A stretch of DNA of 64,000 bases, taken from NCBI RefSeq assembly GCF_000143415.4, contig NW_003314271.1, positions 682,001 to 746,000 on the forward strand, read 5' to 3'. Origin of the DNA: Selaginella moellendorffii (taxonomy: Eukaryota > Plantae > Lycopodiophyta). The notes beneath the pieces are model-generated. The model saw nothing but the letters and a program-made list of their open reading frames with translations. It ran no database searches and was not told the DNA's origin. Positions 56,091-62,100 of the stretch are shown here, in pieces. The translations under genes and the position numbers were made by a program. Within the stretch, counting starts at the first letter, position 1. The number at the start of each line of letters is the position of its first letter.

Positions 56091-56195
56091 ATCCTCTTTC
56101 CGCTAAACAAAAAACAATCTTAAGTTAAATGTTTAAATACAAAACTAATCTAAACATAGTAACTTTAATGCCGAGAGTTAGGGTTCTTGGCAGCT

Positions 56196-57461
56196 ATGGA
56201 GGCTGTGATATTTGGCGACGAGGCGGTGCCTCAGATGCTTCTTCTCCTCTCCCAGGCCGCGCGGGATATCGGCGCTCTGGACCTCTCGTCTCCGCCTGCG
56301 AGGAACAAGAACCCGGTCTCCGCGCCATCGAAATCCAGGTATCATCGCGCATTGCTCCGAGAAGCGCCAAGATCCAGCAACAATGCCCTGGAAGCTAGGC
56401 TTCTCCAGGGGGCCTGCTCGGTCTCTCTTAGCAGCAGGGCGGCCCAAGATCGACCAGAGAGGGAGATGGATCCATCTCCATCGGCAAGGTCAAATTCGAA
56501 TTTCGAGAAGTACAGGGTCTCTGGCCAGGCTAGAATCCTCATGAACAATCTCACAGTTCTAGAGCGAGCGGCGATCGGCGCTGCTGCCGGAGGAATCGCT
56601 GGCGCTTTTACCTACGCTTGCCTGCATCCGCTAGACACGATCAAGACGCGGCTCCAGACGCGAGGAGCGGCAGAGGCGTACAAAGGCTCGATCGACGCAG
56701 CGGTGAAAATCCTCCAGAGCAAAGGCCTGGCGGGGTTTTACAGCGGGATCTCGGCCGTGATCGTCGGCTCCATGGTCTCCTCCGCGATCTACTTTGGAAC
56801 TTGCGAGTTTGGGAAGTCCTTCCTCTCGAAGGTGGCGAAGTTCCCGCCACTGCTCGTGCCGCCGGTGGCCGGAGCCATGGGAAACATCGTCTCGTCGGCC
56901 ATCCTCGTTCCAAAGGAGGTGATCACGCAGAGGATGCAAGCCGGTGCCAAGGGAAGATCCTGGAACGTCTTAATGAGAACTCTGGAGAGGGATGGACTGA
57001 AGGGGCTCTACGTCGGCTACTCGGCAGCTCTGCTCAGGAATCTACCGTCGGGGGTGATCAACTTCTCCACCTTCGAGTACCTGAGAGTGGCGTGGCTGCG
57101 AGTCTCGGGCCAGGATAGCTTGGAGCCATGGCAGAGCGTGAGCTCGGGAGCTCTGGCCGGTGCCATCGCTGCGGCGCTGACGACCCCGATGGACGTCGTC
57201 AAGACGAGGCTGATGACGCAATCGAGAGAGAGGGCGGCGGCGTTCACGTACGAGGGCGTGACGAGAACGCTGGAGAGGATCTGGATCGAGGAAGGATGGG
57301 CCGGGGTGACCAGAGGCATGGGTCCACGGCTGCTCCACAGCGCTTGCTTCTCGGCGATTGGGTTCTTTGCGTTTGAGACGGCGAGGTTTGAGATTCTCAA
57401 GCGCCATGTCGCCAACAAGCAAGCGGAGGTGTTGGAAGTGGAAGTCGACGAAAAGAAGTGA
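56196..57461 (+). CDS. MFL1: Mitochondrial carrier family protein, MITOFERRIN-LIKE 1 (plastid) type
   Basis: Three carrier motifs (PLDTIKTRLQ, PKEVITQRMQ, PMDVVKTRLM); SSAIYFGTCEFGKS and AGAMGNIVSSAI as recalled for MFL1; N-terminal extension; intronless. Confidence 0.85.
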   Translation: MEAVIFGDEAVPQMLLLLSQAARDIGALDLSSPPARNKNPVSAPSKSRYHRALLREAPRSSNNALEARLLQGACSVSLSSRAAQDRPEREMDPSPSARSNSNFEKYRVSGQARILMNNLTVLERAAIGAAAGGIAGAFTYACLHPLDTIKTRLQTRGAAEAYKGSIDAAVKILQSKGLAGFYSGISAVIVGSMVSSAIYFGTCEFGKSFLSKVAKFPPLLVPPVAGAMGNIVSSAILVPKEVITQRMQAGAKGRSWNVLMRTLERDGLKGLYVGYSAALLRNLPSGVINFSTFEYLRVAWLRVSGQDSLEPWQSVSSGALAGAIAAALTTPMDVVKTRLMTQSRERAAAFTYEGVTRTLERIWIEEGWAGVTRGMGPRLLHSACFSAIGFFAFETARFEILKRHVANKQAEVLEVEVDEKK

Positions 57462-57569
57462 AACAAAGTTTTGAGCTCGAGCCTCAGAAAAACTAAATGG
57501 TCAACGGTCAATGAAATACTGCTCTTTGGTCAATGGTCGCTAGGCTTCTTGGTTTAGGGTTTGATCGCA

Positions 57570-58157
57570 ATGCCGGAGAGTCAGATGGCTGTGGTGGCTG
57601 TGGCGGCGGTGGCCGCGATCGCCGTGGGTGGAGCTGCGATCGCATTCATGTACCATTGCTGCCAAGATCAGGTGAAGCGGCAAAAGAAGGAGAAGGTTGA
57701 GAGAATCAATTCGCAATTGGGGATTCGCGACGAGGATGCGCACCACCGCTACGAGCGGCGGGAGGAAGTGGATGTGGTGGAGATCGGGAAGGCCAAGCGC
57801 CCGGCGGTGAGGACCGTGGAAGAAATCAAGGCGTACTATGGCCGGCCTTCGAGGAAGGTGAGTTTTTTTTTTCTAGATCTGAGCAATGGTGTGATTGGAA
57901 AATCTCAAATCGCAGGACGCGTCATCCACCGCTGGAATCGCCACAGAGGCCAAGAACAAGCTCATGGAGCGCGGGGAGAAGCTTCAGGTTTTAAAAATCC
58001 CTTGTGCTTTCCATATCAATGTTTCCATTCTTTGTGTGCTTCTATGTAGGCTGTCAACGACAAGACGCAAGAGCTTGAATCAGAGGCCGAGAGCTTCGCA
58101 TCGCTGGCGGAAGAACTCGCCAAGAAAATGAAGGCTAGAAAATGGTGGGAGTTGTAA
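57570..58157 (+). CDS. 155-aa protein: N-terminal TM helix + tomosyn-type R-SNARE domain; exons 57570-57857, 57916-57987, 58050-58157
   Basis: Two phase-0 GT-AG introns give RTVEEIKAYYG..DASSTAGIATEAKNKLMERGEKLQAVNDKTQELESEAESFASLAEELAKKMKARKWWEL; hydrophobic AVVAVAAVAAIAVGGAAIAFMY at the N-terminus. Confidence 0.8.
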
Positions 58158-58218
58158 ACTTTGTAAATGAATTCCTCTTGTGTAAGTAAGAACAGGGAGA
58201 TTGTATATCGGATTGAAT

Positions 58219-59160
58219 CTATTTCGACCCTTTCCGCGACCGCGCGAACAATCCTTCGACCATTTCCAATCTCTTGAACAGGACGAGCGACAAGATGAGC
58301 AATCCCAGCGACGCTCCCGTGCAAATCACGATGATCTTCCCGAAGTACATGTTATCGTCGGTTTCGTGGCCATTGGGCACATTCATGCCAAACAATCCAG
58401 TGATGGAGTTGAACACGCTGGTGATACAAAAGGTGGCGGCCGCGATCACGAGCATGGAAGTCTCCCTCTTGGCGCTCGCCTCTGCCATTCGCGACTTAGC
58501 AACCTCCTCCACGCACTCGATCGTGGATTTCTTGCAGTGCTTCAATCCCTGGTTGATCCCCGCTAGGAGTGGCTTGTACGCGCAGAGAGCCCTCGCGAGA
58601 TCTTGGTTGCCACCATCGTCATTCTCGTAGAGGGCGGATTGAATGTTCCTCGCGATCGCGTATGTGGATGAGATCTCTTGCTTCAACTGTGCTGTCGCGA
58701 TTCTAACTGTGGGGAGATCACCCACGCAGCAATTTGATGCCTGGCACCGCAATACCTCCGCGCGACCCACAAGATTGGCCACCCGAGGGCCTAGAAATCG
58801 CCACACCTCGTCAATCCCACTCGCCAGAGCTAGAGACTGGAAAGCAGTGGGAGTTCTCCTATCGATCGACGAGTTTTCGCTAGAATTGTTGATAGATCGA
58901 AGCTTGGACCCGAGATCCTCGATGTAGGCATTGGCGAGGCCACTATCTAGCACAAAGACCTCGCTCCCGGCGATGATACAGCACAGATACTCGAGATTCA
59001 TGACGATCACCCCCCAGTAATTCGCGACTGTCACCATCGAGCTTTGGGACACAACAAAAGGAGGCACTAGAGGGAATCGCTGGTTGATATCGTTGGTGTC
59101 GAGTGGCCACGCCTGGATCTTTCCTGCCGAATCCATCCTCTTCCACGCTCTGGCAGACAT
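58219..59160 (-). CDS. Divergent intronless MRS2/CorA-family Mg2+ transporter-like protein
   Basis: GLFGMNVP between two C-terminal TM helices; N-terminal WKRMDSAG..IVMNLEYLCCII..EVFVLD matches the MRS2 layout. Confidence 0.75.
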   Translation of the reverse strand: MSARAWKRMDSAGKIQAWPLDTNDINQRFPLVPPFVVSQSSMVTVANYWGVIVMNLEYLCCIIAGSEVFVLDSGLANAYIEDLGSKLRSINNSSENSSIDRRTPTAFQSLALASGIDEVWRFLGPRVANLVGRAEVLRCQASNCCVGDLPTVRIATAQLKQEISSTYAIARNIQSALYENDDGGNQDLARALCAYKPLLAGINQGLKHCKKSTIECVEEVAKSRMAEASAKRETSMLVIAAATFCITSVFNSITGLFGMNVPNGHETDDNMYFGKIIVICTGASLGLLILSLVLFKRLEMVEGLFARSRKGSK

Positions 59161-62100
59161 TGCGATCGCAAAAAGGCTCCACCATTTATCAATCCTTTGT
59201 GCCTGCCCTATTTTAGATTCCGCGCCGTATTTTAAATTCAATTTGATCCCGATCCAACGGCCTCGATTCGAGCTAGGGCTAATCTATTTTTCCTGTTAAT
59301 ATATTTGCTTGTGTAATCGTAAACATAATTATAGAAAATTTTAAAGGAAATTTTACCTTTTATATCATTTTTTTATTCTATAAAGCAGTTTTCAGATTTT
59401 CAAGTTCCAGGATGCCTCAGTCTTCAGGTTGTTAGCGGCTTCACCGCTCAGTGATGGAAACCTATTTAGCACTACAGCGTGTGAGCCAAAAGAGATATTT
59501 TTTAATGTGGAGCGAAGAGAGATCCCTACCAGCCAATTGCACCTGGAACTCCCCACACAATTTTGAGGCACACAGGATGTGCATAGATTGTGGATGTCTC
59601 CTCTAGATTCCTCTCTTGCCTGTGGATGTCTCCTCAAAAGTTCCTCTCCTTGCTGCATTGTGATGCCTCCCGTTAAACACCTCCCATTAAACACCATCCT
59701 GTTTCAGTGTCTCTCCACGTAGCTGGCAATGATGTGGCATGATTACATGGCACTTCTCTCTTTCCACTCCCGTCCGACTCTCTCTCGAGTGCTGCCACAC
59801 AACAATACTTCTAATCACTTAACTTGGACCAAAGTCTATTTCAGAGGACAGAAAAAAGGGTTCTTTTCCTTTGCACCCAATGCCAACCAGTGTGTAAATA
59901 TCTCTTTGCTTTGCTCTTCAGGATTGGTGGACTTTGGGATACCCTCTTCTGTAGGGGGTTTTAAGTTCTTCTTTGGAATGGAAATGCTCAGCAGCAGCAG
60001 TAGCTCGATTAGAAGTGCTCTTTTTTTTTGCTCTCCAAGGGGCAAGCAATAATGATAAAGCACATGATTTTATTTCTAACACACTGGGCGAGATTCCAAA
60101 CATGGTGGATTTGATGCTGAGACTGGATATATGAAGCGCCTCCCGTTAAGTCGGAGACCTTTCAGGCACCTTATAAAACTTTGTCTCTATGTATAACTTT
60201 GTTTTAGACATTTGTATAATGATTACAAACTTGGTAATGGATATATCTAGAATATGCTCCAATGGTAAATATGCATATTTTTATAAATTAAAAACATGTT
60301 TAAAATTTATAATCATTCTTAAACATCTAAGAAATATACCATGAATATCCAGGTATATCCTAATATATATTTTTTTTCTCTTAAACTTTTAATTCTCTAA
60401 TTCGTTTGTAATCAGTGTTTAAATTTATTTTTCTACTTTATATTTAATATAAACCATGTTTAAATTCATAACTGTTACTGAAATCTTTCAAAGAAAAGAA
60501 AAAGAAAAGGAAATGTGCATTACTACCACTTGATTTGCTTGTAATATGAGAATTTAACTTATCAGGACATCTTTTTAATGTATTTCTTCACAATTCTTCC
60601 CATTGGAAGTGGTGAATTTAAATCTTTGCACTTGAATGTATCTAAGAATTAGAGGAACCTACTATTAAAGCTACTAAGGGCTGCAAGATCATCACCACCA
60701 TTGTTTATGATAGGACTAAGGTTTCCAAGTCTTAGATCACCTAAAAAATGAAGGCCTTCCCACCACCTTCCCACCAATGATGATATTGATATAAGAAATT
60801 TTCAATTGCATTTTATCTAACCATCAAGTAGAGATTGAGAACTTCCATGCCACCTCTACCACTAACACAGCCTAAATCAAGAGGATGTACTCATATATGA
60901 CTACTCCAAATTCAAGACTTTATTTCAGCAAATCCCATGATTTGGTTGTGTTCTTCAAACCTAGTGACTCTTGCTATATTTCTAGAAGAATCTAGGGATG
61001 TAAGAGATTATAATCAAAATTTATAGATAAATAATAATAATAATACCTATTGCATCATTAAATATTGAAACTTTAATTAGAAAGATGTTTTTTTTCATGT
61101 TTTAGGAAAAGAAAATATCAAAATTATCTTTTAATTAATATAAAATTAGACTTTATGTTTTGTTGCAATTTCCTTGGTATAATAGTTTAGCTTGACCATG
61201 GAGTGGTAATTGATTCATCACAAAATAGGAGAACTTAAATTCATGCACCAATTTTTAATGCATGTTTTTATATGAAATTTAATCTAACTAGTGGATTTTG
61301 ATTTATAATTTTGTTATATCTTTCCTTCTGGCACTAAAGAAAAGTATGTAAAATTCAGAAAAAAAAACTCTTAGATTTTTAATGCAAAGACAATGGGGAA
61401 TAATTGTATAAAAGATAATTTTATGTTAAAGCTAATTCCAGAAACTAATTATAGTATTACATATTATCATAAATAAAATTTTATTACAGAAATTTAATAT
61501 GTATAAATTAAAATATGAATGTGATACTAACTAATATTTATAAGGTTTAGAAAAATATAAGTTTATTTTTTTATTAAAAGCACAATTTTGATAGTATAGT
61601 TTAACCAATTTAATATAAAAGTGATGGTAAAATGTAAAATTAAACTTTAACTAAGAAAAATATTAAATTTAACTTAAATTTCTGCATAACTTATAATTTG
61701 TTATAAAAATTCAATTATAGCATTTCTTAAACAACTAAAAATAAAAATAAATTTTTTATTTATGATAGATATTTGAGTCTTATTGGATATGAATTTATTT
61801 ATTATCTATAGTTTAAGTAAAATTTTTGAGTACTTAATACATCATAATTAAGCATAATTTTTCATAAAATAAATCATTATTAAATATTTAATTTATATAA
61901 ATGTATATGATAATTAGAAAAACTTGTACTTGAAGGAAACAGATTTAAATTAGATACTAAAATTCATTGATAAAACATAATATATTCCAAAATATTTAAA
62001 TTTATATGAGAGTCATTTTTATAATTTTAAATTGACTTAATACTGATCAAACCATTACTAAAGTTGAGGTATTTTACTCAATTTCATTAAGGTTGGTAAT

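Follow-up and report, generated by a model that had tools for sequence, protein, structure and literature searches.

Fusogenic R-SNAREs carry a C-terminal membrane anchor, and tomosyn and amisyn, the known decoys among R-SNAREs, are soluble or peripheral proteins. Tomosyn's R-SNARE motif enters a four-helix complex with Qa/Qbc SNAREs and is non-fusogenic for lack of a membrane anchor (PMC8377282). In Arabidopsis, tomosyn binds Qa-SNAREs via this motif, and its overexpression blocks secretion (PMC8964185). Here we analyze a small gene of Selaginella moellendorffii, referred to as mini-tomosyn, that joins a tomosyn-type R-SNARE tail to a hydrophobic N-terminal helix, a predicted membrane anchor. 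The gene lies in a window of 64,000 nucleotides (NW_003314271.1, positions 682,001 to 746,000 of the forward strand), and all coordinates below are positions in this window unless another accession is given. An original prediction, drawn from the letters alone, had presented the product as a stand-alone, inversely anchored and possibly S-acylated decoy SNARE regulating exocytosis.

Compared with plant tomosyns (LOC9636559 of Selaginella, MpTOMOSYN11 of Marchantia and AtTMS of Arabidopsis), mini-tomosyn shares the C-terminus of about 98 residues with its zero-layer Arg and layers +1 to +8, as well as the last two intron positions. Like them, it ends in RKWW(E/Q)x and has no C-terminal transmembrane domain (TMD). 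However, plant tomosyns are about 1100 aa long and bear a WD40/Lgl double propeller, whereas mini-tomosyn has 155 aa and no propeller. Its N-terminal anchor, Cys pair and basic cluster are found in no tomosyn, and a 3-residue insertion in the N-terminal half of its SNARE motif is private to it. Fusogenic R-SNAREs (VAMP/synaptobrevin, brevins and longins) belong to the same Pfam family and have the same zero-layer Arg, but their TMD follows straight after layer +8, whereas the anchor of mini-tomosyn would sit at the opposite end, separated from the motif by a linker of about 65 residues.

The described protein closest to the mode of action proposed here is amisyn (STXBP6), which is small and combines an N-terminal membrane module with a C-terminal tomosyn-like R-SNARE lacking a TMD. 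Amisyn is regarded as a competitor of synaptobrevin. Its membrane association is peripheral and reversible, via a PH domain and phosphatidylinositol 4,5-bisphosphate, whereas the anchor of mini-tomosyn would be an integral helix; the two are of independent origin, and no PH domain was matched in mini-tomosyn by Pfam at E ≤ 1. Two further systems, both unrelated in sequence, resemble it in layout. Vam7, a yeast Qc-SNARE with an N-terminal PX domain, is peripheral and fusogenic and gives a precedent for a SNARE helix tethered from its N-terminal side. The chlamydial (bacterial) protein IncA has N-terminal hydrophobic segments and cytosolic SNARE-like coils that inhibit fusion.

Results

Gene structure and R-SNARE motif

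The gene occupies 57570-58157 on the plus strand, and its three exons give a spliced frame of 468 nt coding for 155 aa. As had been predicted, the spliced product has 155 residues, and it agrees letter-for-letter with the database protein P0001 (NCBI: 'syntaxin-binding protein 5-like [Selaginella moellendorffii]'). Both independent annotations place the start codon at 57570, and the gene is already publicly annotated. Exon 1 (57570-57857) encodes aa 1-96, namely the novel aa 1-57 followed by the tomosyn-homologous start at aa 58-96 with KRPAVRTVEEIKAYYG. Exon 2 (57916-57987) encodes aa 97-120, and exon 3 (58050-58157), which includes layers +2 to +8, encodes aa 121-155 up to the tomosyn-type end RKWWEL and the stop codon. 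The introns at 57858-57915 (58 nt) and 57988-58049 (62 nt, following ..EKLQ) are both GT..AG introns in phase 0. Reading upstream from the sequence, we found an in-frame TAG at 57555-57557 (plus strand), 12 nt before the ATG (15 nt from its first base), and the open reading frame (ORF) that contains exon 1 opens just past it (57561-58049, plus strand).

Its profile score and its zero layer place the protein in the R-SNARE family. Pfam Synaptobrevin (PF00957) matched aa 97-152 (57916-58145, plus strand, interrupted by intron 2) with 37.5 bits against a cut-off of 26.4, covering profile positions 11-66 of 89. Since positions 67-89 are unmatched, the transmembrane part of the profile is absent. 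When the exons were searched separately, only exon 3 gave a Synaptobrevin match (E = 6.6e-4). The zero-layer residue is Arg115 (codon 57970-57972, exon 2), located in ERGEKL of the string MERGEKLQ as originally read, and it aligns with the Arg of the string ..ER(G/D/Q).. in VAMP8 and Snc1 as well as in every tomosyn tail. The residues at layers -1 to +8 run L, R, L, V, T, L, A, F, A and L, and layers +1 to +8 are intact. Small residues (A, A, T, A, S and G) occupy layers -2 to -7, which are Ala-rich in other plant tomosyn tails too. The chain ends in RKWWEL, 12 residues past layer +8, without a C-terminal TMD, and in the alignment all residues invariant across tomosyn tails are retained.

The only solved structures matched by sequence were R-SNARE cores (VAMP8, Snc1, VAMP4, endobrevin and m-tomosyn 1URQ). 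AlphaFold2 in single-sequence mode predicted a helix at 95-154, with block means of the predicted local distance difference test (pLDDT) of 85-95 over aa 101-150. A search of the ESM Atlas by features returned no result, and the neighbours by structure, generic long helices whose template-modelling scores were mostly below 0.5, are uninformative.

Origin from the tail of a tomosyn gene

An exhaustive HMMER search of 1.84 billion representatives returned 232 matches. The best of them are the C-termini of plant tomosyns of 1000-1500 aa, which are 50-58% identical to mini-tomosyn over approximately aa 58-155. The tomosyn-tail match was thereby borne out, its extent being 98 residues and not only the last 80 as first read. 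The top relatives include the Selaginella tomosyn LOC9636559 (54%) and proteins of Sphagnum, Marchantia (MpTOMOSYN11) and Diphasiastrum. Residues 1-57, including the anchor, matched nothing other than the haplotype copy P0002, both in HMMER and when exon 1 or the full protein was used for word-based searches.

Both introns stand at the same alignment positions as the last two introns of the 1139-aa Selaginella tomosyn gene, after ..AYG-x5 and after ..E(K/R)LQ, and the tomosyn gene of another plant also has introns at those two positions. Because these positions are shared with the Selaginella tomosyn gene, we regard mini-tomosyn as a partial duplicate of a tomosyn tail made at the DNA level; the introns retained at parental positions exclude a retrocopy. 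By sequence comparison, its origin is a duplication of the last three tomosyn exons together with a new 5' coding extension. The protein is tomosyn-derived by descent, yet it is not a tomosyn, since it has no propellers.

In a tree of the last 100 residues, mini-tomosyn was nested among the land-plant tomosyns, a clade with 99/97 support, and its stem was long (1.22 changes per column). Over these 100 columns, neither of two constrained placements was rejected. Constraining it to a clade with the Selaginella tomosyn cost 4.9 units of log-likelihood (P value of the approximately unbiased test, p-AU, 0.38). A constrained clade with the bryophyte short forms cost 17.0 (p-AU 0.11), and mini-tomosyn did not join these forms in the free tree.

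The search for the same architecture elsewhere had been named as a check on the original prediction, and here the outcome was negative. In the database, no anchored mini-tomosyn was found in Diphasiastrum, bryophytes or seed plants, and none of the short matches of the exhaustive search had a convincing N-terminal hydrophobic helix. The hydrophobic starts of P0053, P0104 and others look like gene-model artefacts. Two further candidates for short relatives were rejected: P0026 is the 3' end of a full-length tomosyn gene of another plant with an intron read through, and P0175 is part of a full-length tomosyn, sampled as a fragment in a metagenome or metatranscriptome. Because a control search of the database found no tomosyn from any other Selaginella species, we do not describe the gene as restricted to S. 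moellendorffii.

Stand-alone tomosyn tails in other land plants

Propeller-less tomosyn tails turned out to occur elsewhere. In liverworts we found the isolated gene for MpTOMOSYN12 (253 aa), which has relatives in Riccia and Calypogeia; in mosses, a Ceratodon short tail of 231 aa; and in Malpighiales, short tails in Populus (104 aa), Linum and Erythroxylum (about 105 aa). The Populus trichocarpa gene (CM009305.2, L006:8001-8757, plus strand) lies 720 bp downstream of a propeller-bearing tomosyn-like gene of 1115 aa on the same strand, and it might have arisen as a tandem copy, or it might be a 3' end that the long gene uses alternatively. The same Selaginella genome has a 110-aa form, P0134 (scaffold GL377585.1, L004:6400-6939, minus strand), arranged tail-to-tail with the full-length tomosyn gene and 190 bp downstream of it. 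With Pfam Synaptobrevin it scores 26.0 bits, slightly below the cut-off, and its N-terminus has a hydrophobic and basic stretch that is not a transmembrane helix. Both of these genes stand beside the parent tomosyn gene, whereas mini-tomosyn lies at a separate locus.

The short forms share a tomosyn-type R-SNARE without propellers, and none but mini-tomosyn has an N-terminal hydrophobic helix. Since they fall in separate clades of the tree, they probably arose independently, which suggests from sequence that the tomosyn tail was duplicated repeatedly in land plants to make small genes. The novelty originally attributed to a stand-alone mini-tomosyn is accordingly narrower: tails without WD40 occur in Marchantia, mosses, Populus and the same genome, and the predicted N-terminal anchor is the only new element, carried solely by this protein and its haplotype copy. 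In a literature search, we found no description of this gene, of MpTOMOSYN12 or of an N-terminally TM-anchored R-SNARE.

Some features of the other short forms were seen in passing. The liverwort short tomosyns are isolated, with no propeller gene nearby (Marchantia polymorpha KZ772874.1, L005:8001-9854, plus strand). P0020, P0009 and P0161 (MpTOMOSYN12 and Calypogeia proteins of 403-406 aa) start with Met-Cys (MCLTG.., MCFTSG..), and basic stretches come next; such an N-terminus could bind membranes through a lipid or by electrostatic attraction. P0008, a 281-aa model of another plant, contains two tails in series.

The N-terminal helix and its predicted topology

Residues 6-28 (57585-57653, plus strand) form a hydrophobic Ala/Val/Gly-rich stretch, the predicted anchor, with a Kyte-Doolittle mean of 2.5 over 19 aa. 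The four residues Y28-H29-C30-C31 close and follow this stretch, so that the helix and YHCC motif of the original prediction are both present. Cys30 and Cys31 (57657-57662, plus strand) are the sole cysteines of the protein; they lie directly behind the helix and are a candidate S-acylation site, S-acylation being plausible from this position. They are followed by the basic cluster KRQKKEK (K36-K42, 57675-57695, plus strand), in which K36, R37, K39, K40 and K42 are the five basic residues. In the single-sequence AlphaFold2 model, a helix spans residues 6-50, with pLDDT of 47-71 over the first 30 residues, and is followed by a poorly ordered linker. The protein contains no N-glycosylation sites.

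The net charge is -1 in the 5 aa preceding the helix and +3 in the 15 aa behind it. Under the positive-inside rule, flank charges of -1 and +3/+4 would place the short N-terminus across the membrane and the SNARE motif in the cytosol. A luminal SNARE motif, named at the outset as an outcome that would tell against a decoy, is not what this charge distribution predicts.

Haplotype copy and purifying selection

A near-copy of the gene, P0002 (SELMODRAFT_411303, 153 aa), is flanked by the same two neighbours on a different scaffold; the simplest view is that it represents the second haplotype of the assembly. The coding sequences of the two copies differ by five synonymous changes, two non-synonymous changes (P2L and E132Q) and one in-frame deletion of 6 nt at 57768-57773, which removes Val-Asp from the linker. 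The ratio of non-synonymous to synonymous differences per site (pN/pS) is 0.11 (one-sided binomial p = 0.007). In the anchor codons, we counted two synonymous changes (Ala10 and Ala13) and no replacement. Introns and flanks differ by about 4-5% (introns about 4%), and when indels are counted the 108-bp spacer upstream differs by 12%. The flanks also contain indels at 57479, 57514 and 58196-58205, respectively an 8-nt insertion, a 1-nt deletion and a 10-nt deletion. This pattern of substitution supports purifying selection on the gene. The low pN/pS and the retention of all family-invariant residues speak against mini-tomosyn being an idle gene fragment.

Transcription and splicing

We compared contigs of public sequencing runs, presumed to be of RNA, with 56900-58700. 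Four runs from four studies each contributed one contig that skips exactly 57858-57915 and 57988-58049, and none of the contigs on this interval covered the introns. Spliced mRNA is the best explanation for intron-less contigs in four independent data sets, and transcription, another of the checks named for the original prediction, is thereby supported. Both alleles are present in the contigs, in different runs. The 3' ends lie at 58195-58253 for mini-tomosyn and at 57507-57524 for the upstream carrier gene.

In the fourth run, a single contig of haplotype 2, recognized by the 6-nt deletion and a G>C difference at 58083, links the carrier gene to the spliced exons across the anchor-coding part. 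As this contig is continuous through the anchor-coding part, RNA spanning the anchor exists; it may reflect read-through from the carrier gene.

Neighbouring genes

The upstream neighbour is a gene of the mitochondrial-carrier family, whose last long ORF (56187-57461, plus strand) contains three Mito_carr repeats (Pfam, 192 bits) and stops at 57459-57461. From this stop to the ATG of mini-tomosyn there are 108 bp on the same strand (57462-57569), in line with the distance of about 110 bp first given for this gene under the name MFL1. Because the carrier gene ends so close and the in-frame TAG closes the frame, there is no space for propeller exons. Missed upstream WD40 exons are ruled out by the in-frame stop together with an RNA contig that stays collinear with genomic sequence upstream of exon 1. 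The 155-aa protein itself has no WD40 or Lgl match in Pfam, as had been claimed.

The 3' untranslated region of mini-tomosyn, taken as the extent of the RNA contigs (58158-58253, plus strand), overlaps the 3' end of a convergent neighbour. This neighbour is a CorA/MRS2-like ORF with a GMN motif (58219-59241, minus strand), which scored 21.6 bits with Pfam CorA, under the cut-off of 27, and probably represents the final exon of a magnesium transporter of the MRS2/MGT type. Gene spacing is very tight here, with 61 bp between the stop codon of mini-tomosyn and that of the CorA-like ORF. The one contig that joins the carrier gene and mini-tomosyn suggests read-through or overlapping untranslated regions.

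Discussion

A proposed membrane-resident decoy

We propose that the N-terminal helix is most likely an uncleaved signal anchor, with the 5-residue N-terminus on the far side of the membrane and with Cys30, Cys31 and the basic cluster at the cytosolic face. The flexible linker of about 65 residues and then the R-SNARE helix (aa 95-154) would both lie in the cytosol. A flexible linker between SNARE motif and anchor abolishes fusion. In mini-tomosyn, where the tether is only N-terminal, via a long linker, and the C-terminus is free, zippering with Qa/Qbc SNAREs could not pull bilayers together. The protein would then be a membrane-resident, non-fusogenic decoy that fills SYP1/SNAP33-type acceptor complexes on its own membrane and competes locally with VAMP72-type R-SNAREs on whichever membrane carries it. 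Alternatively, it might hold Q-SNARE-bearing membranes at a distance without fusing them. Regulation of exocytosis may be one among several options.

Taken as a whole, the reading of mini-tomosyn as a selectively maintained gene for an anchored, cytosolic decoy R-SNARE is the one towards which we lean, with reserve. Gene structure, expression, homology, origin and constraint are its firmer parts. Membrane insertion, topology, S-acylation, Q-SNARE binding and inhibition are what we infer from the features of the protein.

Several points weigh against this reading. The helix is strong on the Kyte-Doolittle scale, but it is marginal on the Hessa scale, with a sum of -0.6 kcal/mol, and its Wimley-White mean is about 0 (calculated by hand), so membrane insertion is not certain. 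The small residues at layers -2 to -7 and the private insertion make full-length zippering uncertain. The RNA nature of the public runs is only presumed, and the contigs of three of the four runs start at 57603-57609, inside the anchor-coding part. Finally, the gene is known from one species only.

Competing explanations

The strongest competitor, in our view unlikely though to be taken seriously, accepts the cytosolic SNARE motif but puts it on the plastid or mitochondrial outer membrane, where it would sequester Q-SNAREs or vesicles as a tether or sink. Plant signal anchors with a Wimley-White hydrophobicity below 0.4 and at least three basic residues just after them are reported to go to the plastid or mitochondrial outer membrane, and those above 0.4 to the endoplasmic reticulum (PMC4010795). 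The Ala/Val/Gly-rich anchor of mini-tomosyn, with the low Wimley-White and Hessa values given above, and KRQKKEK fit this rule, so the weak helix and basic flank point to the organellar outer membrane rather than the secretory pathway. However, the rule comes from Arabidopsis and is statistical, with about 85-89% of tested proteins obeying it (PMC4010795). The host membrane may therefore be that of the secretory pathway or a plastid or mitochondrial outer membrane; the SNARE motif is predicted to be cytosolic by either route. It also counts against an organellar location that a juxtamembrane Cys pair is more typical of S-acylated proteins of the endomembranes and plasma membrane. Furthermore, we know of no SNARE partner at organelle outer membranes.

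Considerably less probable is that the gene is a young, transcribed and idle by-product of recurrent tail-exon duplication, its N-terminus having arisen by chance from GC-rich simple sequence. Such duplications do recur in plants, the gene is known from a single species and sits on a long branch (1.22 changes per column), and its N-terminal part is of low complexity and without relatives. Against this stand the pN/pS of 0.11 (p = 0.007) and the expression in four studies. Moreover, the frame, the splice sites and the invariant residues are intact at about 54% identity to the parent, which argues for long survival under constraint.

We give slightly less credence again to an mRNA that starts near 57600 and is translated from Met27, which would yield a soluble tail of 129 aa (MYHCC...) like the anchorless micro-tomosyns. 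It would account for the three runs whose contigs begin at 57603-57609 and leave 57525-57602 uncovered. However, these starts match the positions of allelic differences (57574, 57599 and 57608), and since the differences are closer together than the assembly word, the contig breaks are explicable. The contig of the fourth run covers the whole anchor-coding part in continuity with the spliced exons, and both independent annotations begin at 57570. In addition, both haplotype differences in the anchor codons are synonymous, against a 12% difference in the 108-bp spacer.

Least probable of all is a cleaved signal peptide that would leave a luminal or secreted protein with a partnerless SNARE motif, the gene then being no SNARE regulator: the n/h/c-like layout (MPESQ, the hydrophobic run and Gly20-Gly21) and Ala23-Ile24-Ala25, which fits the -3/-1 rule with cleavage before Phe26, speak for it, but an n-region of net -1 before a basic flank of +3/+4 is the opposite of what a signal peptide needs, the hydrophobic run of about 21-23 residues is long for one, and SNARE layers and family-invariant residues under selection would be pointless in the lumen.

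We return, then, to the anchored cytosolic decoy. Of the interpretation offered originally, the architecture, the transcription, the purifying selection and the predicted cytosolic motif stand. The uniqueness of the stand-alone tail does not, and a secretory location is not favoured by the anchor rule. A more specific proposal, that mini-tomosyn is an inversely anchored integral R-SNARE, possibly on the plastid or mitochondrial outer envelope, acting as a resident brake or non-fusogenic tether, is put forward tentatively, and we doubt it somewhat more than we trust it.

Implications

With a single species known and the function inferred, the practical weight of the finding is limited. The gene is nevertheless a clear case of gene birth, in which three duplicated terminal exons were combined with a new coding 5' extension. 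If the anchored decoy is real, a cell can equip one membrane with a permanent SNARE brake or non-fusing tether, and could forbid or hold fusion at that particular membrane. Mini-tomosyn would also put to a natural test the rule that SNARE force needs a C-terminal anchor, and its 155 aa would offer a simple tool for studying how the position of the anchor decides between fusion and inhibition.

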